From: Utricularia gibba
Lineage: Eukaryota > Plantae > Magnoliophyta
NCBI GenBank assembly: GCA_002189035.1
Contig: NEEC01000002.1
Span: 6,014,001 to 6,078,000, forward strand
Direction: 5' to 3'
Length of the DNA: 64,000 nt
Each line of letters begins with the position of its first letter. The stretch's first letter is position 1. Under the pieces are notes generated by a model. The model was not told where the DNA came from. It saw only the letters and a list, made by a program, of their open reading frames with translations, and searched no databases. This document shows, piece after piece, positions 5,801 through 61,166 of the stretch. A program made the translations under genes and the position numbers.

Positions 5801-7930
5801 CTAACGAAAACAACAACCCGCAGTATCGAACCGTTTCATCTTCGCAGTTCACAAATACTCTAGATTCTGAGCTTTTTCAGACTGCTAGAGTTTCAGCAGG
5901 GTCATTGAGATACTATGGTTTAGGTCTTGAAAATGGTAACTATACAGTGACACTGCAGTTTGCAGAGGCTACAATAGTGGGTACAGGGACATGGAGGAGT
6001 GTTGGAAGGCGTGTTTTTGATGTATATCTTCAGGTAACCATACCATGGTATTCCATGTCTAAATGGAGCTTTTCTCCTGGAATATATTATAAGAGAATGT
6101 ATATGGTTCAGGGGGATTTGCTGTTGAGAGATTTCAACATACAAAGAGAGGCTGACGGTGTTTCTAACCGAGCTGTGGTGAGGTCATTCAACGTTTCCGT
6201 AGTGAATAACTACGTTGAAATCCATCTGTTTTGGGCTGGCAAAGGGACATGTTGTGTCCCGGCTCAAGGCACATATGGACCAGCTATTTCAGCTATAAGT
6301 GCAACACCAAGTAAGCAAAAATCCCACCCACAGAATCATTTGTTGGAAAACTTTCTGTTGGTATACTTAACCAGAAACTCTTTCTTAAACAGATTTTGTT
6401 CCAACGGTTTCGAACAATCCTCCCGGTGGGAGACGAAATCATACAGGTCTCATCGTTGGGATTGTTGTTGGAGTTCTTACTGCAAGCTTGCTTGTCCTAC
6501 TTGCAGTTTTTCTTGTCCGCCGAAAGCGGCAACGAGATCTAGAGTATCAAGGTGACTGTGAACCTGCAACTCTCAATCCATGTTTATTTTGTCTGTGCAA
6601 TGACATTTGCTGGTTTCTGTTGTTATGAACATCTAGAACTGTCCGGCATTGATGCTCGGCCTTACACATTCAGCTACTCTGAGCTCAAAACTGCTACCAA
6701 TGACTTCAACGCTGCAAATAAGCTTGGGGAGGGAGGATTCGGCTCTGTCTTCAAGGTAGCTGTCCTTCAGTTCTTCCTAGCTGAAGAAGCATCTGCAACT
6801 GATCCCATATTCTGCAGGGTACACTTGGAGATGGAAGAGTCGTCGCCGTTAAGCAGCTCTCAAAGGCCTCAAATCAGGGCAAGGCCCAGTTTGTTGCAGA
6901 GATCCAGATCATCTCCAGTGTGCAACACCGTAACCTGGTCAAGCTTTACGGCTGCTGTATCGAAGGAGACAAGCGTCTTCTTGTCTACGAGTTCCTTGAG
7001 AACAAGAGTCTTGATAAGATACTGTTCGGAGATGGCAGCACCGGCGTACACCTCAACTGGGCAACACGATACGGCATCTGCTTGGGGATCGCCAGAGGCT
7101 TAACATATCTCCATGAGGAAGCTCGCGTGAGGATTGTTCACAGAGATGTAAAGGCGAGCAACATTCTTCTGGACTCCAATCTGATGCCCAAGATATCGGA
7201 TTTCGGGCTCGCTAAACTCTACGACGATGCCAAAACGCACATTAGCACGGGGGTCGCCGGTACAATGTAAGGCTAATGCTTCATCACTTTCCGATCGCAG
7301 AGCAAGGTTTCATCTGTTTCATTTGTTTGCGCAGCGGGTACGTGGCGCCGGAGTATGCAATGCGAGGACTTCTTACCGAGAAAGCAGATATCTTTAGCTT
7401 CGGGGTCGTGGCTATGGAGATTGTTAGCGGGAGATGCAACTCAGAAACACGCTTGGAACGCGATCGCGCTTGTCTTCTTGGATGGGTATGCTTTTCCCAA
7501 AATGATGTTTGATTCACCTGGGCAAGAGCTCATACTGTGTGTGCTGCTTCAGACTTGGGAGCTACACGGAAACGACATGGAATTGCAGCTTGTGGATCCA
7601 AAAGTGAAAGACTACGACATGGAGGAAGTCAAGAGGGTGATCGGCGTTGCTTTGTTATGCACACAATCTTCGCCGGCGCTACGGCCACCCATGTCCCGTG
7701 TGCTGGCCATGCTTTCCGGTGACATCGACGTCGCTCCGGTGACCTCCCGCCCTGGATACCTGACGGATTGGGAGGTCGCCGATTCGTCTTTCACCACAGA
7801 CGCGTATGCGTCCTCATCAAACACTACTGCTCCTGGGGGTACGAATCCGAGCACAGCCAGCACAACCCTCGCAAGCGAGTTAACGATGATGATCCCGATG
7901 GACTTGGAACAGGAAGATGATCCAGAATGA
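2805..7930 (+). CDS. LRR-malectin receptor-like Ser/Thr kinase, copy 1 (At1g56130/At1g56140/At1g56145-like, LRR-VIII-2); 23 exons
   Basis: Exons 2805-2937, 3043-3220, ten 72-nt LRR exons (3340-3411, 3492-3563, 3677-3748, 3954-4025, 4121-4192, 4293-4364, 4466-4537, 4608-4679, 4758-4829, 4921-4992), 5091-5156, 5234-5299, 5379-5423, 5500-5564, 5657-6033, 6112-6310, 6393-6551, 6637-6755, 6818-7266, 7335-7485, 7553-7930; all GT-AG and phase-consistent. Signal peptide, IKCGG...[12 protein letters not shown] malectin domain, TM helix, kinase motifs [24 protein letters not shown]. Confidence 0.95.
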
Positions 7931-18389: not shown

Positions 18390-21082
18390 ATGGTTAGTAC
18401 AGAACATTGTTATTAGTGAGGAAACTAGCATGCTTATTTTTTCAGTGCTGATGATTATGCTTCATTATTACAGGTGAAGTTTACAGCAGATGAGCTCCGT
18501 AGAATTATGGACCTGAAGCATAACATCCGCAACATGTCTGTCATTGCCCATGTTGATCATGGTAGGAGGACGCAGTTTAAATGTAGTTTGATTTCATATG
18601 AATACCTGAGTTGTTTAATCAATTTTCTTTTCATCCACTTGCAGGGAAGTCAACGTTGACGGATTCTCTTGTTGCTGCTGCGGGTATTATTGCCCAAGAA
18701 GTTGCTGGTGATGTCAGAATGACAGATACCCGAGCTGATGAGGCTGAGCGTGGTATCACTATTAAGTCTACTGGTATCTCCCTGTATTATGAAATGTCTG
18801 ATGAATCTCTTAAGAACTACAAGGGGGAGCGACAAGGAAATGAGTACCTCATCAATCTCATTGATTCTCCTGGGCATGTGGACTTCTCATCTGAAGTGAC
18901 AGCTGCTCTTCGTATTACTGATGGTGCGCTTGTTGTTGTGGATTGTGTAGAGGGCGTGTGTGTTCAAACAGAAACTGTCCTGCGACAAGCTCTTGGAGAG
19001 AGGATTAGACCAGTTTTGACCGTCAATAAGATGGACAGATGTTTCCTCGAGCTGCAAGTTGAAGGAGAAGAGGCTTACCAAACATTTCAGAGGGTTATTG
19101 AGAATGCCAATGTCATCATGGCCACATACGAAGATCCTCTCCTTGGTGATGTTATGGTCTACCCGAAAAGGGCACTGTTGCCTTTTCTGCCGGTTTGCAT
19201 GGCTGGGCATTTACCCTGACAAACTTTGCCAAAATGTACGCTTCCAAATTTGGTGTGGATGAGGGGAAGATGATGGAGAGGCTGTGGGGAGAGAATTTCT
19301 TTGACCCAGCGACTAAGAAGTGGACTACGAAAAATTCTGGATCCCCTACATGCAAACGTGGTTTCGTGCAGTTCTGCTATGAGCCTATCAAGCAGATCAT
19401 TAATACATGCATGAATGACCAGAAAGAAAAATTGTGGCCCATGCTGCAGAAGCTTGGCGTGACAATGAAATCAGAAGAAAAGGAATTGATGGGAAAGCCC
19501 TGATGAAGCGTGTGATGCAGACCTGGCTTCCTGCTAGCAGTGCTCTGCTGGAAATGATGATATTCCATCTTCCTTCACCTGCAAAGGCCCAAAAGTATCG
19601 TGTGGAGAACTTGTACGAGGGACCCCTTGACGATATGTATGCAAATGCTATCAGGAATTGTGATCCTGAGGGGCCGCTCATGCTTTATGTCTCCAAGATG
19701 ATTCCAGCCTCTGACAAGGGTAGGTTCTATGCATTTGGGCGTGTATTTTCTGGAAAAGTCTCCACAGGTTTGAAGGTCAGAATCATGGGTCCCAATTATG
19801 TCCCGGAGAGAAGAAAGACTTGTATGTGAAGAGTGTGCAGCGAACTGTCATTTGGATGGGAAAGAAACAAGAAACCGTGGAGGATGTCCCCTGCGGAAAC
19901 ACTGTTGCCATGGTTGGCTTGGATCAATTCATCACAAAGAATGCTACACTCACCAATGAGAAGGAAGTGGACGCACATCCTATTCGAGCAATGAAGTTTT
20001 CTGTCTCACCAGTCGTGCGTGTGGCTGTGCAATGCAAAGTTGCCTCTGATCTACCAAAGCTTGTTGAAGGACTCAAGCGTTTGGCCAAATCTGATCCCAT
20101 GGTCGTCTGTAGTATTGAGGAGTCTGGTGAGCACATTATTGCTGGTGCTGGGGAACTTCACCTTGAGATCTGCCTCAAGGACTTGCAGGACGACTTCATG
20201 GGTGGTGCTGAGATTGTGAAATCTGATCCAGTGGTGTCCTTCCGTGAGACAGTACTCGAAAGATCATCTCGCACTGTCATGAGCAAATCTCCCAACAAGC
20301 ACAATCGTCTGTACATGGAAGCAAGACCACTGGAAGATGGACTCGCTGAAGCTATTGATGATGGGCGTATTGGCCCAAGGGATGACCCCAAGGTTCGTTC
20401 TAAAATCTTATCTGAAGAGTTCGGCTGGGACAAGGAGCTTGCCAAGAAAATTTGGTGCTTTGGTCCTGAAACAATCGGTCCCAACATGGTCGTCGATATG
20501 TGCAAGGGAGTTCAATATCTCAACGAAATCAAGGACTCTGTTGTTGCTGGTTTCCAGTGGGCTTCAAAGGAAGGGCCATTGGCTGAAGAAAACATGAGGG
20601 GCATCTGCTTTGAAGTCTGTGACGTTGTTCTCCATGCTGATGCCATTCACAGAGGCGGTGGCCAAGTCATTCCCACAGCAAGAAGAGTCGTCTATGCCTC
20701 TCATCTCACTGCAAAGCCTCGTCTCCTGGAACCCGTATACCTTGTTGAGATCCAGGCTCCGGAGCAGGCTCTTGGTGGTATTTACAGTGTGCTGAATCAG
20801 AAACGTGGCCATGTGTTCGAAGAAATGCAGAGGCCTGGTACCCCTCTCTACAACATCAAAGCCTACCTGCCTGTCATCGAGTCCTTTGGTTTCTCAAGCA
20901 CTCTGCGCGCTGCGACATCCGGACAAGCCTTCCCTCAGTGCGTGTTCGATCACTGGGACATGATGTCCTCCGACCCACTTGAGGCCGGCTCTCAGGCGTC
21001 TACTCTGGTGGCTGATATTCGTAAGAGGAAGGGCTTGAAGGAGCAAATGACACCACTCTCGGATTACGAAGACAAGCTGTGA
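18390..21082 (+). CDS. EF2: Eukaryotic elongation factor 2; three apparent -1 frameshifts (about 19165, 19497, 19805)
   Basis: ATG-only coding exon 18390-18392, exon 18474-18561 ([10 protein letters not shown]...AHVDHG), long exon 18645-21082 with [16 protein letters not shown], diphthamide motif [15 protein letters not shown] and C-terminal YEDKL. ORF track is split into four pieces at three single-G gaps. A 5'UTR intron is likely upstream. Confidence 0.95.
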
Positions 21083-38038: not shown

Positions 38039-40209
38039 TCAGAAGTAACTAGACTGCTGTAGCAAGAGATCAAGCACTGCTAAGAGCTTAGCCACCATTG
38101 GGGCAAGCAGGGGATTATCATTTTGCACAAGATCAATAAGCAGAGCTTGAGCTGTTTCGGCATAGGCTTCTCTGTGTGCCATGACTCTGAAAATCCTCTC
38201 CAGTATCCATAGAGCTTTCTCCTTGGCCTTCAAACTCCCACAGGAAAGAATTTTGATGATCCGGGGAACGATAGAGTTGTCGACGAGATATTTGCATCCA
38301 CTCTCCCAGATATCATCTTGTACCAGTGTTGAGAAGCACCTTAGAATGGACTCATCCGCACCCCTCTGGTTGCTGTCGAGAATCTGGACCAAATGTTGTG
38401 TAGCTCCAGCTTTGACTATACATAGTGTGTGCCTCGTGGAGCAGTTTGCGTTGTGAACTTGACAGAGGGAACTTGCAGGAGTAGGCATACAGAGCCATTG
38501 CAATTTCCGCGACTGGGAAAGCTTGGGAGTGTTTTGTGAGAGTTGGGCCAAGCAAAACGCAGCTTGGGATTTGGTGATCTCTGAAGTGCTTGAAAGCAGT
38601 TTGAGAAGAACTGGAAAGATGCCACTTTCAGAGGAGTATATCTGTAGTTTCCTGTCTGCAGGATTGGTGAAACGGAGCAATGTACTAGTGATGCTCTCCG
38701 TCAGATGATCCATTGTTTCTAGTGAACTGCTCTGGCGTGAATTGATCATGGAAAACAACAGAGGCAATAAGTTTGCTTTCCTTAGAATATCGGAGGTTTT
38801 CTTGTCATTCACTGGAAAGGTGCTGAGAATTCCAAGGACTGATACCTTTTCAGACTCTGAATTTGAGGATGAGAGTATCTTTACTAGAGCATGGACATGA
38901 AAATGATCTATCACCTCAAAGAGCTCTCCTTTGACATCCTTGCAAAGCATGTGAACCAATTTTAGTGCACCTGTCCTTAGTTGCAGATCCCCTCCGGTGA
39001 TAAAGGGTAGAAGGAGCTGAATCGCACCATTATCATTCATTCGTATCCTTAATTCAGTTGCAGTCTCATGAGAAGCCACGTTATTCAACGCTTCAATAAG
39101 ATGGCCTTGAATCAGCGGGCTGGATGAACTCAGAAGTGAGAGCATCTGTTGCATTATGTCTTGATTAACTAGAATGCTTTCTGATTTTGCCACCTTTGCC
39201 AGAATTTCTGCTGCTGGTTCCCGTAATGTCATCATCACCGAAGTCACTGAGAACAGCAGATTCAGAAAGGATGGTACAATGCCAGTATCGATCAACCGTG
39301 TTACGTTTTCGGTCAAGTCCAGTAGCATCTCTAAGGCCTTCAAGGAAGACAACTTAGCCTCTAGATTCCCCTTACGGAACATGCTTACAAGTGACTCTAT
39401 AACCCCGTTTTCTCCAAGGAACGCCTTGTGTTGATCAAGGTGTTTTAGTTTGGATAGCGCTGTTGCCATCAGAATCTTGCTCATATCTGATCCTGGAAAG
39501 ATGATGCAACATTTTTTAGCTACAAAGCAATAGAAATTTTCATGTCCATGAAAAAAGGAGAAGTCTTACCTCCTTTGAGGAATCTGATTATCGGTTTGAA
39601 GTAGCCAGCTTCAGCCATATGAATTGCGTGTTGAGGATTACTTGACATCGAGTTTAGCAGCGCCTCTGCATCATGCGAAGCCTCCTTATTATCCGAATTC
39701 GAGATGTAGATCAGCAGCAAGATGCATCCCCGTATTTGGCCGATGGTACGTATGACTCCAACATCATCGGAAAGACACCGCAGAAGGCCAACTGCCTCTC
39801 CCTGCTCATGAACATCGCGTGCCATTGACTTCACCAAAGCTGATAGAAACTCCAACTGTTTCATCTGTTCCTGTACACTTCGGAGCAAAGGGTTAAGAAA
39901 GGCTACCAGCTTGAGGTTTGATGTGAACACATTGTGCCTGCAATTACCTTGTGTTCATCGTTTTTCCGAGCAAGATACCGTAGCATTCTAATGATCATGA
40001 CTCTGTCACTCTGTTTACAGACAATCAGCAGACGGCATAGAGCAGCGACTATACCTTGTTCATCTATAGTTCGGTCCGAAATCATGCCATCCATCATCGT
40101 TCCATTCAATAAGGCAAGAGCATCCTCCAGATTTTCACTCTTACCACTCTTGATCTGTAAAATTGCGTCGTCAACTGTTGCTACTATCGCTTCTTCTTCT
40201 TCTTCTTCT

Positions 40210-44876: not shown

Positions 44877-46214
44877 TAATACATTAAATGCAAAATTAAC
44901 TTCACATTATTCTAATTTAAGTGAACATATTCATATAATGACTAATTATCCAATTTTTTTCCAAAATTCATATTATTTAAAAAATTAGTTTTGTTGCTAC
45001 CTGAAAAAATTCTTACCATACTTAGTAATATATGATAACTGTCATTTTATCTCACATACATTCAAGTAAAAATATTATGAAAAAAATTATGTCAATAGTC
45101 CATACTGTTTACCTAAATGACATAATTGATATTCCAAAATAATATTTTAATTTCTATTATTTCAAAATCATTTATAATTAGTCTCCATGGTTTCCAAATT
45201 GGACAAAAATAGTTCCCATTTTCCAAATTATTAAACAATAGGGATGAATTATATTTGGTTTTTAAATATTAAGAACTAATTATAAATTATATTTAAACAA
45301 TGAAGATAAAAAATAATTGAATTAAAAAATTTGAGAATTAATATGCCAGATATACAAATTTGGAAACTAAATGTCAATGGAAGATTATTTATGCTATTTT
45401 CATTAAATATTGGGGATTAATCATGTTAATTTTAAAAACTTTAAGGAATTATGCCGTCAAGTGCCCAATATATAATATATTTATTTTTTTCAGCGTAGTC
45501 ACTTTTATAATACACCCGGTAATATATTCATTATATATCATATTAAATAAGAGATATCTAAATTAATCATATTAATTTATAATTAAAATATTTTTATAAT
45601 ATTAATTAAAGTAAAATATTAGCAAACCCAATCGCCAATCCTCCATGTTGACCCCACATTCGTAAAACCTGGAATTTCCATACATTTGAGCCTGGCGCGA
45701 GGCTGCAGCGAAATCTTGGAGCCAAAGGATTTCAGTCAAAATCCGACCTCCCTTTGCAATTCGCAAATCTCTCTCGCCCTAATTCGCATCCTTATTGCCT
45801 TTTTTTGGGAAGCCATCAGTTTCGATACAGATCCCTTGTACATCATCGTACATTGCCCCTTCATGTGAGTCCCGTCTGCGTGTGCTGCTGTGGCTGTTGG
45901 GGCTCCATCAGGAATTGAATTTGATGCCCTTCTGTTGATTGTTTCAAACTATTTTTGGAAAACCTGCGTAATCTCTTGAGGGTCTATCTCAATCTGGTGA
46001 TTGCTCGGTATATTTTATCCAAGTATCTGGATTTTTTGATAGGGTTTTGTTTTCCTCTTTTTTGTTCGCGTTTCTGGGTCGGTTTCGGTTGTGGATTGTT
46101 TAAATTGGAGGATTTATGAAAATCGGGGAGGTGGGATTTGTATCTCATCGTGTTGTTTCGATTTGGGAGGGTGTTGGATCGTGATCAGCAGAAAAATTGT
46201 GTTTTTTCTGCGTG

Positions 46215-49200
46215 ATGCTTGGAAAACGGATTCTGGAAATAGGAATGCCTAAGGTGAAGCGTTGCTCAGTGGAGAAGGAAGAAATCGTCCAATGGGAGAC
46301 GCCCACTGCGGATTCTGTAAACTCGAAGAACACGCAGGGTCAATTTTTCAGCATTCCTGTTTTTCAATCCCAAAACGAAACCAGTAATTTCTCCAAAATT
46401 TGTTCTCCGACTACAGTATCAGTGTCCAATGGCGATTTGAATCCTGTTCGCCGGGCAGCAGCAAAGAATAAGCCACCGCTTTTAAAGTCTTCTCGTGGGC
46501 GTAGGCAAGCGTTGCCCACAAAGTTTAGTGATTCCGTTTTGCACACATGGAAGAAAGAAAAGGCGGATTCCCCTGATGAATACCAAAGTGACGAGGATGT
46601 AGCTCGGAAAAAGAATTTTGAACTAGAGGAACCGGATGAATATAATGACGTTTATTTGGTCAAGAAGCCACGGATTGAAAGGAACGTTGCATTTTGTTTG
46701 AAAAATATAATTTTAGAGCCTTATCCCAGTTCAAGAAATCCGTTGCCGTCGGCTCAGGAAGTATCACGTCGGGCTACTCCTTTGGTGGGAGACGCTGAAA
46801 GTCTGAGTGGATATGCGGGAGTTCAAAAACAATCGAAGGTTCGGGCTAATGAGAAGAAGGCAGATTTTTATGAACTTGATGAGTTTAAAGTGGGGGATGT
46901 AGTTTGGGCGAAATGTGGGAAGAACTTCCCTGCTTGGCCTGCTGTAGTTATTGATCCTCTTTATCAAGCCCCTGAAGCGGTACTGAGAGCATCTGTTCCT
47001 GGCACACTTTGTGTGATGTTCTACGGCTACGCAAAGAATGGGCGAAGGGTAATCTCCTCTAATAAAAAAATTGGAAAAAGTTTAGCAAAGAGGGTTTCAT
47101 GATCAGCAAATTATCTTCCTTGATTTGTTCCGCTGACACTGTGTTAGTGGGTAAGCTGAAAAAGAAAGTTTCTTAATGCCGCTTGTGTTGTTTTTTGCAG
47201 GATTATGCGTGGGTTAAAGCTGGAATGGTCTTTCCATTTCATGAGTACGCTGACAGGTGAAACTAAATTCAGCATCTTGCAGAAAATTCATGATCTAGAA
47301 TTCAAGTGAAATGGTGTGTGTTTATGATATTAGGTTTCAGGGGCAGACTAAGTTATATGGCAGTAAACCTAGTGATCTCCTTATGGCTATAGAGGAAGCG
47401 ATATTAGCTGAAAACGGCTTTGCAAATCCTACCGCAGATGCTGAGCAGGAAACAGTATCTCTTCGCAGCAATGGCAGTACTGGAGTGGTGACTGGATCTA
47501 ATCAGATCTTAGAATCCACTGCTCATCAGGCAAGCTTCAACTGAGATTTCTAGTGCAACTTTTTGGTGATTATGGCGCTAGTTAGTAGTTTTACACTGCG
47601 AATTGATTTTACTGGGATGGGCTGTGGAGACTTACCTGTAGTATCTGAAAAATTGAGTTGGTTTTTGTGACGCCTTGAATGATGCTAGATTTATTATTGT
47701 AAAAAAATAATAATAATAAAGAAAGTGATGTTCGATCACTATTGAACTCTCATCGTGTAGTGAATTTTTCCGATTATCATAGGCAGTAGATTTCATGCTT
47801 TCCCATTGAGTAAAAGTATGATGACCTTTTTTATGCAAGAAGTTTGATTGGTGTATCCTTAACTGTCTTTATGAAGGATACGGGTGATAATGTCAGAGGC
47901 ACACGAGAGTGTAACAGCTGTGGATTGATATATTCCAGCAAGATGGTGAAGAAGGAGAAAACAGATAAAGGCGTCTTCCTGTGCTGTCATTGTATTAAGG
48001 TTTGCTGATAGTTGTTTTTCTATCATTGCTGGAGTGATATACAAAATGATATGTATAGCTTCTGATCTTTAGAATGTTGAACTTGCAGTTGAGAAACTCT
48101 AAACAATTTTGTGGCATTTGCAAGAAAATTTGGCATCATTCTGATGGAGGTGGTTGGGTGAGAAATCCACCTTGAATTCTCTGTCTGTGGGGTTTTCTGA
48201 TTTATTTTACTTAATTAATTAAGTTTTTATGCTTCCTTGATTTAGGTCTGTTGCGATAGATGCAATGTCTGGATTCATGCAGAATGTGCCAACATTCCTA
48301 CTGATATTTTGAAGGTCTGCCTACAGATTCTTATGCATCGAGATGTATTTTATGCTTTCAGGGAGTTATTTTCATGCAAATTATTAAGTTTGTACTTTTG
48401 TCATGCGTGTGTTATATGTAGGACATAGAAAACAAGGATTTCATTTGTTCTGAATGCAAAACAAAATCCAGAGCTGAATTCATGCAATTGGAGAGGAAGC
48501 AGTTTTATACAAGGTTTGGATTTTAAAGGAGTTTTTTCTTCATCCATCTTCATTTTTTCTTCCCTTAATTGATCTTTCCATTCTGGTTTTTACAGGCCTG
48601 CTGAAAAGCGTGGAACTAAAGCCCCTCCTGAAAAGATCATTGTCATCTGTAATGGGATGGAAGCAATTTATTACCCAAGCCTTCACTTGTAAGTTTTCCT
48701 TTACTTGAGGTGTAACTGGATATGTGTGAACATAGCTTCGATGGTGTGTCTCATATCATGGAATATTCTGATTTTTTAATGAACTGACTAAATGTTTGTC
48801 TTACTGTTCTCAGGGTCCAGTGTACATGCGGTGCCTGTGGGACCAAGAAATATGGACTGAGTCAGTGGGAGAAGCACACTGGATGCCGAGCTAAGAAATG
48901 GAAGCATAGCGTAAAAATCAAGGGTTCCAATACAACACTTGAAAGATGGGTTGGTTTTACTACATGTTTGTGGCATGCTTTCTTAAATGATTTATGATAT
49001 TGGCACTCTTGCGCATTATAGAGTTCTCTTTCATTTTGGCTTAGTTATCCACCTTACCATGCTATGTATTTGTCGTTAAAAAAAATTCAAATGAGCTTCT
49101 TTTCTGTACCCATGCTTGTATGTCCATTTAAGTGAATTGTAACCTATAACTCATGTTTGTTGGTTTTATCTGATAATCTATCTATCCTGCAGTTATCAGA

Positions 49201-52118
49201 TTACAGTGCGTATGGTGTCAGTAATGTGAAATTGGATAAGCAGCAACTGTTTGCGTTTCTTAAAGGTGTTACTTTGCTTTTCGTTGTTCAAGATGGATAA
49301 TACATTACGCACTAGTGGGCTATTTCTTACCAAGTCAATTTCACAGAAAGCTACGAGCCTATTCTTGCAAAGTGGACGACTGAGAGATGTGCAATTTGTA
49401 GATGGGTTGAAGATTGGGATTATAATAAAATAATAATATGCAACAGGTATGTCTAGCTAAGATTAATGCTTCTCATTTAAACTAGGGAAAAGACGTTTTT
49501 TTCAATTGAAGCTAACTCTCTTTTAATTAAGGTGTCAAATTGCCGTACACCAAGAATGCTATGGTGCCAGAAAAGTTTCCGATTTTTCTTCTTGGGTCTG
49601 CCGAGCTTGTGAAACTCCAGAGATTGAGAGACAATGCTGCTTGTGTCCGGTCAAAGGTATGTCCTGCAACTTAGCTTGAACTTGTCTTTGTTGCTGTAGC
49701 AGTGGTTTAATTTCACTGATTCATTTCTAATCAGGGGGTGCTTTGAAGCCAACCGACATTGATGGTTTGTGGGTTCATGTCACATGTGCTTGGTTCCGTC
49801 CAGAAGTTTCAATTTTGGATGCTGAGAACATGGAACCAGCGACTGGGCTTCTTAGGATTCCGCCAACTGCATTCACAAAGGTTGGAATCCAAATATTGCA
49901 ATTGTTATTTTCCGTGGAACTGAATAGGAGTTCTTTTGCATGTGAAATGTCTTTCCTGTAGTAGCATTGAACTGGATAATTTGAGTTTTTTTTTTTCAAT
50001 TTAAACGAAAGTTTCCATCATTGTTTTCCTCTTCCTCATTTCTCAATTATCTGAATTATGCAGGCCTGCGTTATCTGCAAGCAGATTCATGGTTCTTGCA
50101 CACAGTGTTACAAATGCTCCACACATTTTCATGCTACATGTGCTTCGCAGGCTGGATTTTGCATGGAAGTAAGCTTTCTCAGTTTTCTCTTTTAATTGAC
50201 TTGATTCTCGTTCGTGTTTTCTATAGTTTTATATTCTCAATAAGGTGGCCAAATAATCAATTAAGGACGTAGATGGCTCAATTTCAGTCAAAGAAACTTG
50301 CTCTTTATTTCTTTTGTTTGATATAATGTTGTCGTCTTCAAAACCCAGTTACACTGCTCCGAGAAGAATGGGACACAGACAACGAAGTGGATATCCTATT
50401 GTCCTTTTCACAGGTATGACTGTCTGCCATGCTTTCTCTGTGTTCTGTTAGATTAGTAACCTGCTTACCTACTTTGGAGTTTCCCTTTCATCGCCATAGT
50501 TAGATTTCTGTATGAACCAGGCTTAGTTCACCAGCTTCTTGTCTTATATATATTCTTGCTCTCGTGCAGTCGTAAAATAAGTGATTAAGGAATCTAGTAA
50601 TCAATGTAATTTGTGACACTACTGTAATTGGGATGCAAAACTTTTCAGGACTCCAAGTTCTGAGAATGGATTGGTTATCCAGACGCCACATGGTATATTC
50701 TCTAATCGAAGTTTACTGCAAAACCAATATCAAAAACAGTGCTTGAGAGGTTCAAGGCTTATCTCACATCGGACCACTGAGGACAATGCGTCATCTCCTC
50801 CTACTTTGGTGGAATTTGATGAAATGTCTGCAGCAAGGTGTCGCATCTACAAAACATCAAGGCTCGAGGTAGCTTAATCCTTTCTTTGTAATGCCCTGAT
50901 GTTTTCACTGGATTTATGGCACTTGGATTTTTTTATTATTTATAATTTCAAATATGGTTAGTTTTATTGTTCTGTTTTCGTTCAATGCTACAGAAAACTG
51001 GAATAGATTCTGTTTTTCACCGGTTATCGGGACCTCGCCATCATTCATTCCATGAAATTGATTGTCTACGTTTGTGCGACAAAGTAAGAAATGCCCTTCA
51101 GGTGATTATTATGCATATCACTCCTGTCTAGTTTTTAACTCACTGTTGTTGCCCTTTTGCTTTTTTTCATCGTAAAGGATAATCAAGAAGCAAAAGCTTT
51201 TTCGACATTCATGGAACGACTTGAGCATTTAAAGGTAGCTTGTATGTTAAATATGCCAATCTTCATTTACGCTATGAGAAGATCTCATGGAAATTAACGG
51301 TCTTCCCATATTTGATTCTTCAGAGGACAGAGAAATTTTATGTTTGTTTTGGTAAATCAAGGATACATGGATGGGGCCTCTTTGCCAGGCGGGACATCCT
51401 TGAAGGGCAGATGGTAATATGTCTATCCCATATCTTCTCTTTGTGATTCACAAGCAATGCAGTTCTCATATGCCCTGCTTGCTGCTGCTCTTGAAATTGT
51501 TCAGGTTGTGGAGTACCGTGGCGAACAGGTTAGACGTAGCATAGCAGACCTCAGGGAAGCCCGGTATCGGCTCGAGGGCAAAGATTGCTATGTAAGTTCA
51601 TCAAGGGCCCTCCTCTTCATCATTCCCAAGCTCAATCAACTGCTACTCCCTTTGCTGATTTTTGGTTTCTGTTTGATTACTACTCAAGCTCTTCAAAATC
51701 AGCGAGGAAGTGGTGATCGATGCTACGAATCAGGGGAACATAGCCCGCCTCATCAACCATTCAGTACACTTCATTTTTCGAATCCTGTTTTCTCTGCATG
51801 CCGCTTCTCCTATTGCTTCTGAACATCAAGCATTGTGTGCAGTGCATGCCAAACTGTTATGCAAGGATTGTTGGCGTGGGGGACGACGAGAGCCGAATAG
51901 TTCTCATCGCAAAAACCAACGTCTCCGCCGGCGACGAGCTGACGTACGCTACCCCTCCCTCTCCCTTTCCCTTTTGGGGTGCTCCACTGTTTAGATCACT
52001 GTCTCATGATGCCATGCCCAATCTCAGGTACGACTACTTGTTCGATCCAGACGAGCACGAGGACGTCAAGGTCCCCTGCTTGTGCGGCGCTCCCAACTGC
52101 CGGAGGTTCTTGAACTAA
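46215..52118 (+). CDS. ATX3: Trithorax-like histone H3K4 methyltransferase (ATX3/4/5 clade; PWWP, PHD, SAND-like, SET, post-SET), 23 exons
   Basis: Exon 1 46215-47048 (PWWP: GDVVWAK...[10 protein letters not shown]), PHD exons ([45 protein letters not shown]), SET ([26 protein letters not shown]), last exon 52028-52118 (YDYLF...[13 protein letters not shown]). All junctions in phase; intron 3 (47530-47876) is GC-AG. The exact ATX3/4/5 orthologue is uncertain. Confidence 0.93.
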
Positions 52119-52305: not shown

Positions 52306-53046
52306 GCAGTCAGTATATGCCATGCATTTCTTGAGGCTCTTGCTGCACAATGGATGAAATATTTGAAAATTGGCCATTTTTAATACACTTTTTTTATCTG
52401 AATATATGAAATATAAAAAATCAGCTATTATACAACCCTGGTTCACAAATAATAGTTGATAAGTGACTTAAGTGATGGACACATCATTGTTTTGTGATAT
52501 AGGGATTTGAAAATTTTGTTAGATTTGGAGCTAATTTTATAATTTGAAATTGTGTTTCAAAAATATAGTCAATTTTGAAATTATATGAATAAAATTAAGT
52601 TAACATTAAAACTGTTTTGTGATATATTAAAAAGTTTAATAAAATAAAATATATAATATAAATTTAATACTATTAAATTATCATATAATTTAATAGTATG
52701 ATATAAATATATACAAATAACTTTATTTTCATATTATAATCATTGTCTATCAAAAATTAATATCATAAAAAAATAATTTATTTAAATTTAAATAAAAATA
52801 ATATTAAAAAATCATTTTTTAAAATATTATTTAGTTAAATATAATTATAATTAACATTAAATAAAATAAGGAATAAATGTGATTCTAAATAAATTATTTT
52901 ATATAAATTTATTAAAAAAATTCTCACAATCATGAACTTATTTAAACACATGAAATAAACACAATATAATTCATAATTTTACTTTTAAACCCAATTAAGA
53001 AAACAATATCTCACAATACATGTACACGTGCAAACCAAAAGAGGCA

Positions 53047-56000
53047 AAAATGTTTTCAATAATCTTTTTTTTAGTCAATTGCATTTATATCCATATTAAA
53101 AGTTTACCCTCTAACCTAAAATACAAAATAAATCATGCAAACTAATTTGACTTGAAAAAAATAAGGTTAGGCAACGTAGGGTGGGATAATATATATTTTT
53201 ATTATTATTATTGTTTCGATAATATCTGTGGAATTAAGCAAGGGGCATGAGGCGTAGTGTCTCCATAAAGGAACTTGGGTGTGGAGGGGGCGGGCCGTCA
53301 GGGAGAAGCTGAAAATGTTTCCAGCAAGCTGTGCCTTCTCTCTTCTTCCTCAGTCGACCATCTGGGCGTCTCCCAAGTTTTTCGTCTCCTCCTCTGCTCT
53401 CCAAGCTCGTTCCAGGTATCTCTTTGGTTTGGTAACTTGCGTTTTTCAGTGGTTGCTCTGGTTTAAAGGGGTCTCTGTTGCAGAGGAATCAAGGCTGTGA
53501 AGACGCAGCAGATCACACACTCTATGCCTCCTGAGAAGCTTGAGATCTTCAAGTCATTGGAAGAGTGGGCTTCTGAGAATGTTCTGGTTTATCTTAAGCC
53601 TGTTGAGAAGTGCTGGCAGCCTCAGGATTTTCTGCCGGATCCGTGCGGTGATGGGTTCTTTGATGAGATCAGGGAGCTGAGGAGGAGGACGGCGGAGGTC
53701 CCGGATGATTACCTGGTTGTTCTGGTGGGTGATATGATCACCGAAGAAGCGCTCCCTACGTATCAGACGGTTCTTAATACTTTTGATGGCGTGAGGGATG
53801 AGACAGCGTGTAGCTTGACTTCTTGGGCGAAGTGGATCAGACAATGGACAGCTGAGGAGAACAGGCATGGAGATCTTTTGAACAAGTATTTGTATCTCTC
53901 TGGAAGAGTCGACATGAAGCAGATTGAGAAGACGATTCAGTACCTGATTGGAGCGGGAATGGTAGTACCCTGCCTCTGCCTGCATACTTTTCTTTTCTTC
54001 CTCCTCTGACTCCTCTGTGTTTCAGGATCCAGGCTTTGAGAACAGCCCCTATCATGGATTCATCTACACCTCCTTCCAAGAGCGGGCAACCTTCATCTCC
54101 CACGGGAACACGGCCCGGCTCGCCCTTCACCACGGCGACGACACTCTGGCTCGAGTCTGCGGCACGATCGCCTCGGACGAGAAACGGCATGAGATGGCAT
54201 ACAGTAGAATCGTGGAGAAGCTATTCGAGGTGGATCCCGATGAGACGATACTGGCCTTCGCGAGAATGATGAAGAAGAAGATCATCATGCCGGCGCACTT
54301 CATGCAGGACGGGCGGGACACCAACCTCTTCAGCCATTTCTCCTCCGTCGCTCAACGGCTCGGCGTCTACACTGCAAGCGACTACGCAGACAATGTAGAG
54401 CACTTCGTTGATCGATGGAAGGTGAGGGATCTGGTTGGGCTGTCGCCGAAGGGGCAGGAAGCTCAGGAATATGTATGCGGGCTGGCGGCGAAGATCCGGA
54501 GACTGGAAGAGAGAGCTCAGAGCCGGATCAAGGAAGGCCGGAGGATCCGATTTAGCTGGATACACGACAAGGAAGTGCAGCTCTGAGACGAATGCTGCTG
54601 CTGCTGCTACTGCTGTCTTCCTACAATACTTGTGTACTGTTATGGATCGAAATAACATTGCCATCATCACCATCCTCTCCTTGTTCTATACATGATCATT
54701 AAACACAAAATGCAGTTGGCAATACCCTGATATCGGTTGCTGCTCCACCATCTAGTATTAAAATAAACGATATCATATTTAAAATTAAAACAATCAAATA
54801 TATAATAAATTATAAATAATTAGTAATTGATTGATTTCAATTTTTTTTTAATGTGATACACATTTTTTATATATTTAAGCTTTACATATGTTCGTTCGAT
54901 TCATTTGATTCTGATTTTCAATATTATTTGCACTACTCCTATGCACATAAACAAAGCCCCGAAGTGAAGAAGTTATCACTCAAGGTTAATACCTCTCTCA
55001 ACATTCATCATCTTCCAAGTTAATCAGAGCTGCCACGTCTTTCCAAATAAAATTCCAACATTCACGACTGGATGATATATAATAAATATTAATTATATTG
55101 AAAAATATTATATTTAAATAGTTATTAATAATTTATAATTTATTATATACTTTAACATTTTATTTATTTTCTGGAATTAATATAATATTAGACTAGAAAA
55201 TTGGGAGTATTTGGATGATCCAACACCAGCCGCAGTTTCTCGTGGTCAGAGCAGTTCCACTTGGCTTGTGTATCCTCACGGAAATACACTCGGACAAATT
55301 TACGTATGACACAATGTGCGTGCTTGTCAAATTATATTATTAAAAATGAGTATCTCGTTATTTATTTCAAATATTTTTAAAATAGCAATTATAAATGTGA
55401 GATTTTAAATAATTAATATTTTAAAAATAAAAGAAAAAGGAGTGATAGAATTTGAATATTTCACATAGCATTAAATAATATTATCTCTTAATTTTTGTTG
55501 AGTTTTTTATATTTCATTTCAATCATTTTCATTTTTAAATTTGAATTTTATTTTATGTTTCTAAGTTTGGTTTTTTTCTCTCTTTTTTTGAATTTCATTA
55601 GATTTGGCTTAAACGAATCTTACATCGGTTACATATAGAGAACAATATGTATTTAAATAGATGGATAATCATAATCTTATAAAAATATTTTTTTCTAAAA
55701 CAAAAAATATAAAACCGTGAAAATGGATATCCGAAAACAGATAATATCATATAAAAAAATATAATTTGTTATATTTGATATCAGAGCAAAATCTAAATCT
55801 GTAATTAATGGTAGGGCGATTCTCACGGAGGAGGATGAGTTTCTAAAGGGGGTGGAAGAGCCCAATTTTCTAAAATTTCATTGAGTATGGTGATCAAGTT
55901 ATATTCTATGAAGTATTTATAAAACATAAACTCATCTCAAATATTTAATATTATATTTTGCATTTAGTGTCGAAATTTTTTTATATATTTTATATTAAAA

Positions 56001-56090
56001 ATATATTATTTTAAAATATTTTACCGTATATTAATTTTCCGAAATGAAATATGCACCACAGGTATTTCTCCCTTACAAGCATGGAATAAT
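53047..56090. repeat. Copy A of an approximately 3-3.7 kb tandem duplication unit (desaturase plus flanks)
   Basis: Collinear blocks: 53047-54740 vs 57409-59280; 55193-55536 vs 60152-60498; 55887-56090 vs 60914-61136. Confidence 0.85.
53315..54586 (+). CDS. Plastid acyl-ACP desaturase (FAB2/SAD family), copy 1, intact, 3 exons
   Basis: Exons 53315-53415, 53484-53961, 54026-54586; transit peptide with SPKFF; [10 protein letters not shown]; di-iron ligands EEALPTY, EENRH, QERAT, DEKRH; ends [11 protein letters not shown]. Confidence 0.95.
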
Positions 56091-56150
56091 TTTAAAATAA
56101 AAAATTATTCAGTAAATAAGAGAGGAAGAGAAGGGCTCTCTTCGTGATAT

Positions 56151-56260
56151 ACCATTTTCCCAAAAACGAGTTTGCAAAACACCCCGATTTTGGATTGGAT
56201 TCGTAAAATACCACATTTTAGATGAGGTTTGTAAAATATCTTGTGTTGGTGTGATATTCG
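56151..56260. mobile_element. Possible Mutator-like MITE terminal remnant
   Basis: TTTTCCC...GTTTGCAAAACACCCC...CGTAAAATACCAC...TTTGTAAAATA pattern resembles MULE-MITE TIRs. Begins just after homology to the LEA promoter ends. Partner TIR not identified. Confidence 0.3.
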
Positions 56261-56705
56261 ATTATTATTGATTATTTTTATTAAACTGTCATTTTTTTAT
56301 TTTAAATTCAAAAAATTATCAGTGTTTTTATCAACAAATTCTTCTATTACAACAAACTCTCATTAAACCTACTGATTTTGCCATCATCTTTTTCCTCCTT
56401 TTTTTTTTCCTTCCATCAAACTAAGCTGAATCCTTGCTCCTTCCATATCTTATATTATCATATCATAGTCACTGCCTACCAGCAATTAATATCATAACAA
56501 AATATTCTGATTTATAATAGACCGCCGCCTACCTAAAAAAGTATCTTTCCGTGAGTCGTTCTTCAGGTTATTGAAAAATATTCCCTCCCAATTTTATCAA
56601 CCTAAAATAATATTTTCTCCTGTCTTTTTTTTTCTATATTTGTTGTGTATGCTAAATTCTTTAAAAAAATTTTAAATATATTTTAAAAAATTGAAATTAT
56701 ACTAA

Positions 56706-56956
56706 GTCCTTGTTTGATATGAGGGTATAAAATTGGTTTATGGTAAATTTAATAAAATTGTATTGTTTGGTATGTAAGTATAATTATACATTATATATGG
56801 GTATAATAATCATTTTATCTATATAATACCACCATATATGAATATATATATACCTAAGAAGGGATATGAGTATTTTTATACTCATATATTTGAATTTAGC
56901 TAAACCCAAATAATCTAAACCTACTAATACCTAAAACACATCAGTCAAACAAGACC
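56706..56956. mobile_element. Tourist (PIF/Harbinger) MITE, about 250 bp, with TAA target-site duplication
   Basis: TAA|GTCCTTGTTTGAT ... GTCAAACAAGACC|TAA; TIRs match at 10/13; TAA at 56703-56705 and 56957-56959. Confidence 0.75.
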
Positions 56957-56959
56957 TAA

Positions 56960-57060
56960 GGGTTTGTTTGGTTGGGGATTGATTTGAATTATAAAGTATA
57001 TGTTTTTCGTGGAATGAATACGTGTTTAATTGATAGATTTAGAATTGTGTTATTCATGTT
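56960..57060. mobile_element. Left end of a second Tourist-like MITE directly abutting the first
   Basis: TAA|GGGTTTGTTTGGTTG Tourist-type TIR sharing the TAA; right TIR not found and end coordinate approximate. Confidence 0.45.
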
Positions 57061-57535
57061 TTTCCTTAGAGAGGTATGATTATTATTTTTTTATTATGAC
57101 TTATGAAATGATGAAAATTCAGTTTTTATTTTTTGGTTCGTAGATGTTTGTTTTCAGTAGATTGATGTGTCTCTAGGATTTTGAAAGTCCAATTTCAACT
57201 CTTTCATTAAAATTGATTAATTGGACAATAGAAAAATGTATGCAATACTAAAGCGATGACTAAAAAAGATTATGATTTCTAGCAGAAGAAAAGAATCTAA
57301 GCTCTTCAAAAAAAAAAAAAAACGCGATGCAAGAGTAATCTTATAATGAAGATGAATTGGTTTTTTAGTTTGATTGTAGTAAGTGTTTGATTGATATGAA
57401 TAGAATAAAAAATGTTTTGAATAATCTTTTTTGTTTAGTCAATTGTATTTATATCCTTATTACAAGTTTACCCTCTAACCTAAAATACAAACTAATTTGA
57501 AAAAAAATGGTTAGGCAATGCTGGGTTGGATAATC

Positions 57536-57556
57536 ATATATATATATATATATATA
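57536..57556. repeat. (AT)n microsatellite in the promoter of desaturase copy 2
   Basis: About 10 AT units, versus only about 3 at the aligned site in copy 1 (near 53189-53196). Confidence 0.85.
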
Positions 57557-57664
57557 GTATTCTTATTTCGATAATATCTCTGTGATTAAGCTAAGGGCAT
57601 GAGGAGTGGTGTCTTTTTATAAAGGAACTTAGGTGTGGAGGGGGGCGGCAGGGAGAAGCTGAAA

Positions 57665-59134
57665 ATGTTTCCAGCATGCTCTGCCTTCTCTCTTGTTCCT
57701 CAGTCGGCCATCTGGGCGTCTCCCAAGTTCTTCATCTCCTCCTCTGCTCTCCAAGCTCGTTCCAGGTATCGCCTTGGTTTGGTAACTTGGGTTTCTCAGT
57801 GGGTGGTCTGGTTTAAAGGGGTCTCTGTTGCAGAGGAATCAAGGCGGTGAAGACGCAGCAGATCACACACTCTATGCCTCCTGAGAAGCTCGAGATCTTC
57901 AAGTCATTGGAAGAGTGGGCTTCTGAGAATGTTCTGGTTTATCTTAAGCCTGTTGAAAAGTGCTGGCAGACTCAGGATTTTAGGTAGGATGATTATTTGA
58001 TTGTTAAATATATTGTTTGATAATATTTAAATATAAAAAAATAATAATTATTACAAATGTTACTGTAAAACATCTATAATAATTCATATGAATGATTGGA
58101 AAACACCTATAAACAGTAACCGATCGGTTCCAGTTACGGTTCGATTCAAGGTTTCGTCCGTACTGTTCCAAACCGAAACCGGAATCGTGTATACAGTGAA
58201 TCGCGGTTTTTAAACCGATGGTTCGTTGGAACCGTTCGTTCTGAACCGAAACCGTTCGAAACCAAACCCACCCAACTCTAGGTGATATGATCACCGAAGA
58301 AGCGATCCCTACGTATCAGACGATTGTTAATACCTTGGATGGCGTGAGGGATGAGACAGCCTCTAGCTCGACTTCTTGGGCGAAGTGGATCAGACAATGG
58401 ACAGCTGAGGAGAACAGGCATGGAGATCTGTTGAACAAGTATTTGTATCTTTCTGGAAGAGTGGACATGAAGCAGATTGAGAAGACGATTCAGTACCTGA
58501 TTGGGTCGGGAATGGTAGTAGTCCTGCCTGAATGCTTTTCTTTTCTTCCTCCTCTGACTCCTCTGTGTTTCAGGATGGAGGCTGGGAGAACAAACCCTAT
58601 CATGGATTCATCTACACCTCCTTCCAGGAGAGGGCGACCTTCATCTCCCACGGGAACACGGCCCGGCTCGCGCTGCAGCACGGCGACGACTCTCTGGCTC
58701 GAGTCTGCGGCACGATCGCGTCAGACGAGAAACGGCATGAGATGGCGTACAGTAGAATAGTGGAGAAGCTATTCGAGGTGGATCCCGATGAGACGATGCT
58801 GGCCTTCGCGAGAATGATGAAGAAGAAGATCATCATGCCGGCGCAGTACATGCAGGACAGGCGAGACACCAACCTCTTCAGCTATTTCTCCTCCGTCGCT
58901 CAACGGCTCGGCGTCTACACTGCGAGCGACTACGCAGACAATGTAGAGCACTTCGTTGATCGATGGAAGGTGAGGGATCTGGTTGGACGGTCGCCCAAGG
59001 GGCAGGAAGCTCAGGAATATGTATGCGGGCTGGCGGCGAAGATCCGGAGACTGGAAGAGAGAGCTCAGAGCCGGATCAAGGAAGGCCGGAGGATCCGATT
59101 TAGCTGGATACATGACAGGGAAGTGCAGCTCTGA
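57665..59134 (+). pseudogene. Acyl-ACP desaturase copy 2, disrupted in exon 2 by a deletion and a transposon-like insertion
   Basis: Exon 1 57665-57765; exon 2a from 57834 reaches an in-frame TAG at 57985; homology resumes at 58281 (GDMITEE) to 58514; exon 3 58574-59134 is open with di-iron ligands retained. Confidence 0.85.
58006..58280 (-). mobile_element. hAT-type MITE fragment inside desaturase copy 2
   Basis: Dense AACCG/CGGTT subterminal motifs at about 58118-58262 and a terminus reading TAGAGTTGGG on the - strand. One end only, no 8-bp TSD. Confidence 0.6.
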
Positions 59135-59747
59135 GACGAATGCTGCTGCTGTCTTCCTGCAATACTTGTGTAGTGTTATGGATCGAATCAACATTGCCAT
59201 CATCACCATCCTCTCCCTGTTCTATATATGATCATTAAACACAAGATCCAGTCGGCAGTTTCCTGATATGCATTGCTGCTTTACTATGACAAAGAAGTAA
59301 TGAGAGCAGGTAGAGAAATGTTAGACACATAATTTGGGAGTTTGATAGAAGTACAAATAGCTGGTAACTTCAGGGAGCAGTCACCCTGCTCCTTGGAGGT
59401 GATGTGTCGGTTGTTCTTCTGTTTACAAGAGAAATACACAAAAGTTAGAAGGTTTTGAAAACTAAATTATAACATAAAGAGAAGTTTTTTATATATGAAG
59501 TCCCCATGTGTTGAATGTGTGGCCCCTTTTAGCATTTGATTGGCTGTCCCTTATTCATCTGACCCATGTGAAGGTGTTCTCTTTGTTTATCTTAGATGTG
59601 TGACAAGAATCCTTTTTATATTATTAAAACAAATAATTCCAATTTAAAATTAATATAATAAATTATATATCATAATTAATTGATTAAATTTAATTTTTAA
59701 ATTTTTTTTTTCAATTATTTATTCGAAAACGTAATATGTAAACAATG

Positions 59748-59807
59748 AATCTTGAATTATTCTTCATCATCACAATTAATCTTGAGTTATTCTTCATCAT
59801 CACATTG
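59748..59807. repeat. 30-bp imperfect tandem duplication
   Basis: AATCTTGAATTATTCTTCATCATCACAATT followed by AATCTTGAGTTATTCTTCATCATCACATTG. Confidence 0.85.
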
Positions 59808-61166
59808 AATCAATCCTTATCAATATAATTAATACGTTACTTGGTTTTGCGACTACATACTTCTCACTCACCATCCCTTGAACACATATGGTTGTTCAAG
59901 TATAAATTCTCATCAGCTCAAGTGGTGGATCTCTTCTGCAAGCACTCTCGAGGTTCGCTCGAGAGTTTGATATGCCTCTACCGAGAGTTGCACGTCATAT
60001 TCATTTCCGACTAATTCCTTGCATACAAACAGCCGAGTAGAGGGGTTCCTTATAACCTATCCACATTTATCCCCTTAACTCTGCAGGGCTGGTGATATCT
60101 CCAAATGCTCTTGTCATAGAACAATACACAGTTCTCAACTTCTTCCTATATCTAGAAAACTGGACGTTTTAAGGACCGGAGATCCTACACCAGGCGCAAC
60201 TTGTGAGTCTCTCGTGGTCACAGCAATTCCACTTCGCTTCTGTATCCCTCTCGGACGACTTTACGTATGACACAATGGGTTTGCTTATCAAATTTTATTA
60301 TTAATAAAATAATATCTTGTCATTTATTTCGAATATTTTAAAAATAGGAATTATAAATTTGAGATTTTAAATAATTAATATTTGAAAAATAAAAGAAGAG
60401 GAGTGATAGAATTTGAATATTTCACATAGCATTAAATAAATTTTATCTCTTAATTTTTGTTGATTTTTTTTAGATTTCATTTCAATCATTTTCATTTTTT
60501 TCATTCGATTCTTCCTTCCTTTTAATTTGTTCAAGTAAATTGATAGTGAATTTTATTTATGCTTCTAAAATTTATTTATTTTTTCTAAAATTTTATTATT
60601 TGATCACTAGTATAGAAATATCTTACTTCTATTTATAACAATCATGATATAAATAATATATTAAAATTTATTTTCAAAATTCCAATTGTACCTATATCAG
60701 TAGTAAATGCACATATTCGATACAATATTTGTTTTATTAATTTTTTAGTTAATAATTAATTTATTTTAGTATTTTTAAAATTAATTTAATATAATTTAAA
60801 TATTATAAATTGAAATTATCATGACACACTTATAATTTTTCAGATCAAGAATTCACGCACCCAAATGCATGAATCGATGAATCAACTCACCCGCATCTAC
60901 ATGTACTAGGAGGATGGTGATCAATTCATGTTCTATGAAGTATAATTATTTTTTTATAAAAAATAAACTCATCTCAAATATTTAATATTATATTTTCCAT
61001 TTATCATCCAAACATATTTTTTAAAATCTTTTTCTATTAAAATATATCTATTTTTTACTTATATATTCTTTTAAAATATTTTAGGCTATACCAAATACAC
61101 CCCATGGGTATTTCTCCCGTACAAGCATGGAGTAATGTTAACCTAAAAAAAGGAAAAGAATATGAA

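Follow-up and report, generated by a model that had tools for sequence, protein, structure and literature searches.

The window analysed here, a 64,000-nucleotide stretch of the Utricularia gibba genome (GenBank assembly GCA_002189035.1, contig NEEC01000002.1, positions 6,014,001 to 6,078,000 of the forward strand), carries a tandem pair of sequences of the soluble acyl-acyl carrier protein (acyl-ACP) desaturase family. The upstream member, referred to as copy 1, reads as an intact three-exon gene at 53315-54586 (+) with a product of ~379 amino acids, and the downstream member, copy 2, spans 57665-59134 (+) with the same three-exon layout interrupted within exon 2. The gene models of both copies were read directly off the window sequence, and sequence searches were run exon by exon, each exon serving separately as query. 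The components of the two copies are given below, with residues numbered as in the castor stearoyl-ACP desaturase (SAD).

53315-53415 (+), copy 1 exon 1 (sequence reading): 101 nucleotides (nt), ATG start, Ser-rich N-terminal presequence, phase-2 donor AG/GT
53416-53483, copy 1 intron 1 (sequence reading): 68 nt, phase 2
53484-53961 (+), copy 1 exon 2 (1OQ4 alignment, PF03405): castor residues ~19-177, with E105, E143, H146, V114, L115, T117 and F118
53962-54025 (+), copy 1 intron 2 (sequence reading): 64 nt, GT..AG, phase 0, between M177 and D178
54026-54586 (+), copy 1 exon 3: castor residues 178-363 and TGA, with P179, F181, H187 (54053), G188, F189, E196, E229, H232 and S280
57665-57765 (+), copy 2 exon 1 (sequence reading)
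Between 57765 and 57834, copy 2 intron 1: 68 nt
57834-57981 (+), copy 2 exon 2a: castor residues up to F67, PF03405 positions 1-33 only
57982-58280 (+), copy 2 filler (self-BLAST break points, junction reading): 299 nt, AT-rich
58281-58514 (+), copy 2 exon 2b: I114 (58323), V115 and L118
58515-58573, copy 2 intron 2: 59 nt
58574-59134 (+), copy 2 exon 3: G179 (58577), W181 (58583), K184, R273, S280 and R316

The reading frame, splice sites, iron ligands and stop codon of copy 1 are all intact. Its start is the first in-frame ATG after a stop, in an exon 1 of identical length in copy 2 (101 nt), and the Ser-rich presequence encoded there, which has no acidic residues and includes an SPKF motif as in other SADs, is likely a plastid transit peptide. 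In the alignments with the castor structure 1OQ4, the exon 2 translation stops at castor residue 177 and the exon 3 translation starts at residue 178. Both copies have three exons separated by one phase-2 and one phase-0 intron (positions relative to FAB2 being compared by phase only), which is the layout described for FAB2-type genes (PMC11859870), and copy 1 is accordingly FAB2-type rather than AAD-like in its exon/intron structure. The desaturase introns (53416-53483, 53962-54025, 58515-58573) measure just 59-68 nt, a very small size for plant SAD genes, in keeping with a compact genome.

Copy 1 is a member of the soluble acyl-ACP desaturase family with intact catalytic residues. The exon pieces match PF03405 (FA_desaturase_2) with E values of 1e-68 to 1e-78, exon 2 of copy 1 covering profile positions 1-143 (230 bits) and exon 3 positions 144-325 (264 bits). 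In a search of the PDB, exon 2 aligned without gaps to residues 27-177 of 1OQ4 (E 4.8e-85) and exon 3, again without gaps, to residues 178-363 (E 2.5e-85); therefore, castor numbering transfers directly to the codons. A check codon by codon found all six di-iron ligands (E105, E143, H146, E196, E229, H232) kept in both copies, within EENRHG/DEKRHE motifs, and T199 is kept alongside them. Castor is the best structural match for both exons (287/288 bits for exon 2/exon 3), ahead of ivy 2UW1 (260/267) and Thunbergia 7T63 (236/240). Copy 1 thus departs from the delta-4/delta-6 variants of ivy, coriander and Thunbergia, its residue 280 being Ser and castor being the closer match.

Copy 2 is a recently arisen pseudogene. 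A segment of 96 nt of its exon 2 (32 codons, castor residues 68-99) is lost, with the 299-nt filler in its place, and PF03405 profile positions 34-66 are absent. The filler begins with an in-frame TAG; its boundaries (AG/GT ... AG/G) are intron-like, and splicing at GT..AG leads immediately to a TGA, so that copy 2 is disabled whether the filler is retained or removed. The filler was rejected as a new intron, the GT..AG splice being out of frame, and as a transposon, since it lacks terminal inverted repeats and a target duplication and occurs only once in the window. GGTTCG/AACCGAAACCG motifs are frequent in the right half of the filler (57982-58280). Two further substitutions in copy 2, G273R and L316R, fall at sites that are each 99% conserved among 239 desaturases retrieved for comparison, which form the sample used throughout. 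An earlier sequence-only reading of this DNA had described a pair of tandem desaturases. Two tandem copies are indeed present, as one gene plus one pseudogene and not as two working enzymes; the damage to copy 2 was implied there by a mention of its repair, while its pseudogene state was not spelled out.

The substrate pocket was defined by the eight castor positions 114, 115, 117, 118, 179, 181, 188 and 189, which line the pocket bottom and have been tabulated with their natural variants (PMC6554319 Table 1; PMC11859870). The residues found at these positions and at two further sites are as follows.

Castor: M114, L115, T117, L118, P179, T181, G188, F189; L187 and D280
Copy 1: V114 (GTT, 53770), L115, T117, F118 (TTT, 53782), P179 (CCA, 54029), F181 (TTT, 54035), G188, F189; H187 (54053) and S280 (AGC, 54332)
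Copy 2: I114 (ATT, 58323), V115 (GTT, 58326), T117, L118 (TTG, 58335), G179 (GGA, 58577), W181 (TGG, 58583), G188, F189; H187 and S280 (AGC, 58880)

All codons named in the sequence-only reading were found as stated in both copies, and its assignment of castor positions 114, 115, 118, 179, 181 and 280 held in the gap-free 1OQ4 alignment, an alignment with castor SAD having been proposed there as a check. The five positions among these to which it ascribed chain-length specificity (114, 115, 118, 179, 181) belong to the pocket set of the literature (PMC6554319 Table 1; PMC11859870). Relative to castor, copy 1 differs at three of the eight pocket positions (114, 118, 181) and copy 2 at four (114, 115, 179, 181), whereas the octet is invariant across all 18:0-specific enzymes tabulated (PMC6554319). 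Delta-9 palmitoyl-ACP desaturases (PADs), among them Arabidopsis AAD2/AAD3, the cat's-claw enzyme and cotton SAD6/8, form a known group, and in PADs bulky residues shorten the pocket (PMC5790276). The pocket of AAD2/AAD3 is T114/S179/F181 (PMC6554319), with Phe at castor T181 as the key to their palmitoyl-ACP specificity (PMC11859870), and in the cat's-claw PAD W118 is the sole pocket change relative to castor (PMC6554319). These precedents bear out the claim that aromatic residues at 118 or 181 shift the enzyme toward 16:0, and PAD-type bulky side chains are present at the pocket bottom of both window genes (F118 and F181 in copy 1, W181 in copy 2).

The pocket states of the window genes were compared with those of the sampled desaturases. 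T181 is found in 207/234 and L118 in 132/153 of the sampled proteins; F181 occurs in 2 and F118 in 9 of the 239, and no sampled protein combines F118 with F181. W181, G179 and H187 have zero occurrences in the sample. Position 280, which controls the ACP binding mode (D280K moves castor activity from delta-9 to delta-4; PMC8456182, citing Guy 2011), is Asp/Glu in 211/239 and Ser in 2 (<1%), and no sampled protein has H187, R257, T276 or Q271. Altogether, the window genes carry a state present in <2% of the sampled desaturases at 29 alignment positions, five of which are N-terminal alignment gaps and most of which lie outside the pocket.

With regard to descent, a word search with exon 3 and a profile search (exon pieces aligned with the Lamiales paralogue P0004) yielded no close orthologues, the best identities being 75% for exon 3 and 82% for exon 2. 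The exon 3 tree places the pair inside a Lamiales clade (support 92/92) on a stem of 0.43, compared with a median end branch of 0.078; the exon 2 tree confirms the long stem, exon 2 being too conserved to place the pair. These results support a lineage-specific locus, as the sequence-only reading had suggested, one of FAB2 type that sits within Lamiales on a long branch of its own. Part of the stem may be explained by a substitution rate raised across the lineage, as reported for bladderworts (PMC4350169). Craigia P0083 and P0041, the other two proteins with F181, group in a clade of their own (100/91) in the exon 3 tree, and the window genes do not share descent with this F181-bearing clade (in a sample without AAD2 and AAD3 themselves). 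The F181 of copy 1 therefore appears to have arisen independently, which suggests that the pocket of copy 1 is an independent and convergent, PAD-like one. A literature search on bladderwort desaturases found no paper.

Among characterised enzymes, copy 1 shares with Arabidopsis AAD2/AAD3 (seed endosperm/aleurone) its membership of the soluble di-iron acyl-ACP desaturases, Phe at castor T181, a non-Met residue at 114 and a tandem arrangement. It differs from them in having V114, P179 and F118 instead of T114, S179 and L118, and in its place within the Lamiales FAB2-type clade with a putatively convergent F181. Muc-PAD (cat's claw, Dolichandra/Macfadyena unguis-cati, Bignoniaceae) is, like copy 1, a Lamiales FAB2-type enzyme with a pocket-shortening aromatic residue at 118, but it has Trp118 alone, whereas copy 1 combines Phe118, Phe181 and V114 and is far more divergent overall. 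The likeness to castor (1AFR, 1OQ4, 2XZ0)/FAB2 extends to the best structural-database match, the gap-free alignment over 27-363, the six ligands and the gene layout; in addition to the pocket changes, the window genes differ by D280 to Ser, L187 to His and an N-terminus shorter by ~17 residues. Several Lamiales FAB2-type SAD paralogues (P0004, P0124, P0211, P0239, P0180) also have remodelled pockets with aromatic 118 and altered 179/181, which points to repeated pocket remodelling in the order; none of them has Phe/Trp181, exceeds ~75% identity in exon 3 or forms a supported clade with the window genes. Variant pockets observed include F118 with I179 in Orobanchaceae (Phtheirospermum, Castilleja, Orobanche), which account for several of the sampled F118 proteins, W118/V179/M181 in Striga asiatica and L114/F118/I181 in Handroanthus. 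The combination of F118 and I179 is reportedly a pair once engineered into the castor desaturase to favour 16:0. One further database entry, Bienertia sinuspersici P0121, looks mis-joined (a C-terminal desaturase half, an N-terminal half and a second C-terminal half), and its score is inflated because of this gene model.

The two copies are ~95% identical in coding sequence. Over 346 shared codons, the synonymous divergence (dS) is 0.114, the nonsynonymous divergence (dN) 0.035 and the pairwise dN/dS 0.31; non-coding divergence is close to dS (8.8% in intron 1, 11.4% in the 3' untranslated region). In the mature part 20/313 aligned codons differ (93.6% identity). Five of these 20 differences are the pocket residues 114, 115, 118, 179 and 181, i.e., five of the eight pocket codons (Fisher p = 3e-5), in agreement with the earlier claim that differences between the copies fall on channel positions. 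Two-base codon differences are found only at 179, 181 and 184, giving six changes in 18 nt (54029-54046 vs. 58577-58594; permutation p ~0.03), and codons 114-118 form a second small cluster. The 179-184 cluster could be a product of selection, of a complex mutation or of a short conversion tract. Counted per site, the pocket enrichment is real; it loses significance if each cluster represents a single mutational or conversion event.

We have polarised the copy differences against the 239 other desaturases. The derived state lies in copy 2 at 10 sites (L115V, P179G and S184K among them) and in copy 1 at three (L118F, S175A and R359K), and seven differences are of ambiguous polarity, including 114 and 181. 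L118F arose in the copy 1 lineage (TTG to TTT); by parsimony, residue 181 was already aromatic or hydrophobic before the duplication, and L118F followed later. The terminal branch in the exon 3 tree is 0 for copy 1 and 0.078 for copy 2, and copy 1 has accumulated ~3-10 changes since the duplication vs. ~40 expected under neutrality (dS/2 = 0.057). Given the few derived residues and the zero-length exon 3 branch, copy 1 has been constrained since the duplication and is under purifying selection. For copy 2, an average dN/dS of ~0.45 fits a functional period followed by decay. The earlier proposal that the paralogues explored different pockets is only suggested by the per-site enrichment, since the differences form two small clusters and most of the changes that can be polarised belong to the lineage of copy 2, as do the clearly damaging G273R and L316R.

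Taken together, these observations lead us to favour, with moderate confidence, a reading in which copy 1 is a working plastid delta-9 desaturase of 16:0-ACP (or shorter chains) and copy 2 a tandem duplicate that was later inactivated. Copy 1 would descend from a Lamiales FAB2-type stearoyl-ACP desaturase and is likely 16:0-shifted because it combines T181F, as in AAD2/AAD3, with an aromatic residue at 118, as in cat's-claw. Phe181 and Phe118 would fill the bottom of the pocket, and the unchanged di-iron centre would keep the enzyme acting at delta-9. With its pocket shortened, the enzyme would prefer palmitoyl-ACP (16:0), or perhaps myristoyl-ACP (14:0), to stearoyl-ACP, and the products would be omega-7 (or omega-5) monoenes. 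Copy 2 may have gained pocket changes of its own (V115, G179, W181) before losing function via the 96-nt deletion and the filler. For copy 1, the preferred chain length, the products, import into plastids and expression are inferred.

Several points weigh against this reading and are best considered together with its alternatives. Pocket residues alone are imperfect predictors, as illustrated by cotton GhA-SAD5/GhA-SAD7, which kept an 18:0 preference despite divergent pockets (PMC6554319), and copy 1 retains P179 where AAD2/AAD3 carry Ser. Copy 1 could accordingly be an ordinary delta-9 stearoyl-ACP desaturase whose odd residues reflect fast lineage evolution and not a change of substrate. The cotton precedent and the raised bladderwort rates cited above would agree with this, as would a stem that is long along the whole protein and the predominance of rare states outside the pocket. 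We nevertheless consider it unlikely, given the uniform octet of the tabulated 18:0-specific enzymes, the strong retention of T181 and L118 in the sample, and the report of T181F alone as the AAD2/AAD3 determinant, to which copy 1 adds F118.

The substitutions H187, S280, R257, T276 and Q271 could also alter folding, ACP docking or regioselectivity. An altered regioselectivity or an unusual monoene (delta-4, delta-6 or 14-carbon), brought about by the loss of acidic residues (S280, R257, T276) together with the pocket changes, draws on the role of residue 280 in ACP binding and on the rarity of these states in the sample. Yet Ser, in contrast to Lys, adds no positive charge at 280, which leaves a regioselectivity change possible and less likely; the delta-4/delta-6 variants need deeper, not shallower, pockets (PMC8456182), and with both exons castor scores higher than the structures of the ivy delta-4 and Thunbergia delta-6 enzymes, so that we regard this explanation as very unlikely. 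A bolder variant, in which F118, F181, H187 and the acidic loss at 257/276/280 would yield a desaturase of chains of 14 or fewer carbons or one with a shifted double bond, supplying an unusual monoene to some lineage-specific purpose (for instance surface/trap lipids), with the pocket divergence as a trace of positive selection, appears distinctly unlikely. Lastly, both copies might be decaying, copy 1 being an intact-looking relic that is unexpressed or functionless. Neither protein search returned anything that equals or closely resembles copy 1, hence no transcript-derived copy was seen in the public collections; this also counts against the favoured reading. The twin is already dead, and tandem SAD arrays, common in Lamiales and elsewhere, undergo birth-and-death turnover (PMC12807125). 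The collections, however, apparently do not include this genome at all, a neighbouring open reading frame (ORF) being absent from them too, and the intact frame, splice sites, ligands and stop of copy 1, together with its shortage of derived residues relative to the neutral expectation, make such a relic most improbable.

Omega-7 palmitoyl-ACP desaturases have arisen several times via a blocked pocket bottom, and copy 1, if the 16:0-directed reading is true, would be another independent case. As the only F118 and F181 combination among the sampled desaturases, it offers a natural double mutant for testing pocket shortening by two aromatic residues, and it might serve as an enzyme source for making omega-7 or shorter monoenes. 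It opens up no new kind of biology, and SAD tandem arrays that include dead members are common.

The duplication itself extends beyond the genes. Self-BLAST delimits two units, which match each other in four collinear blocks at 77-92% identity.

53046-56104 (+), duplication unit 1 (self-BLAST): promoter region, gene and ~1.5 kb downstream
57408-61150 (+), duplication unit 2 (self-BLAST)

A tblastn search with a canonical SAD across the window returned only the two copies, with no third. A lipid gene cluster was considered and rejected, since the neighbours in the window are malectin-like, EF-G-like, ARM repeat and PWWP/SET genes. Elsewhere in the window lie genes for a malectin-domain protein (5620-6552), an EF-G/EF2-like GTPase (19820-21079) and an armadillo-repeat protein (38042-39484 (-)), none of them lipid-related. 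Directly upstream of copy 1 is a multi-exon gene that encodes a PWWP domain (46197-47099) and finishes in a SET-type C-terminus (ORF end 52118); over 46197-52118 it looks like a trithorax/ATX-type histone methyltransferase.

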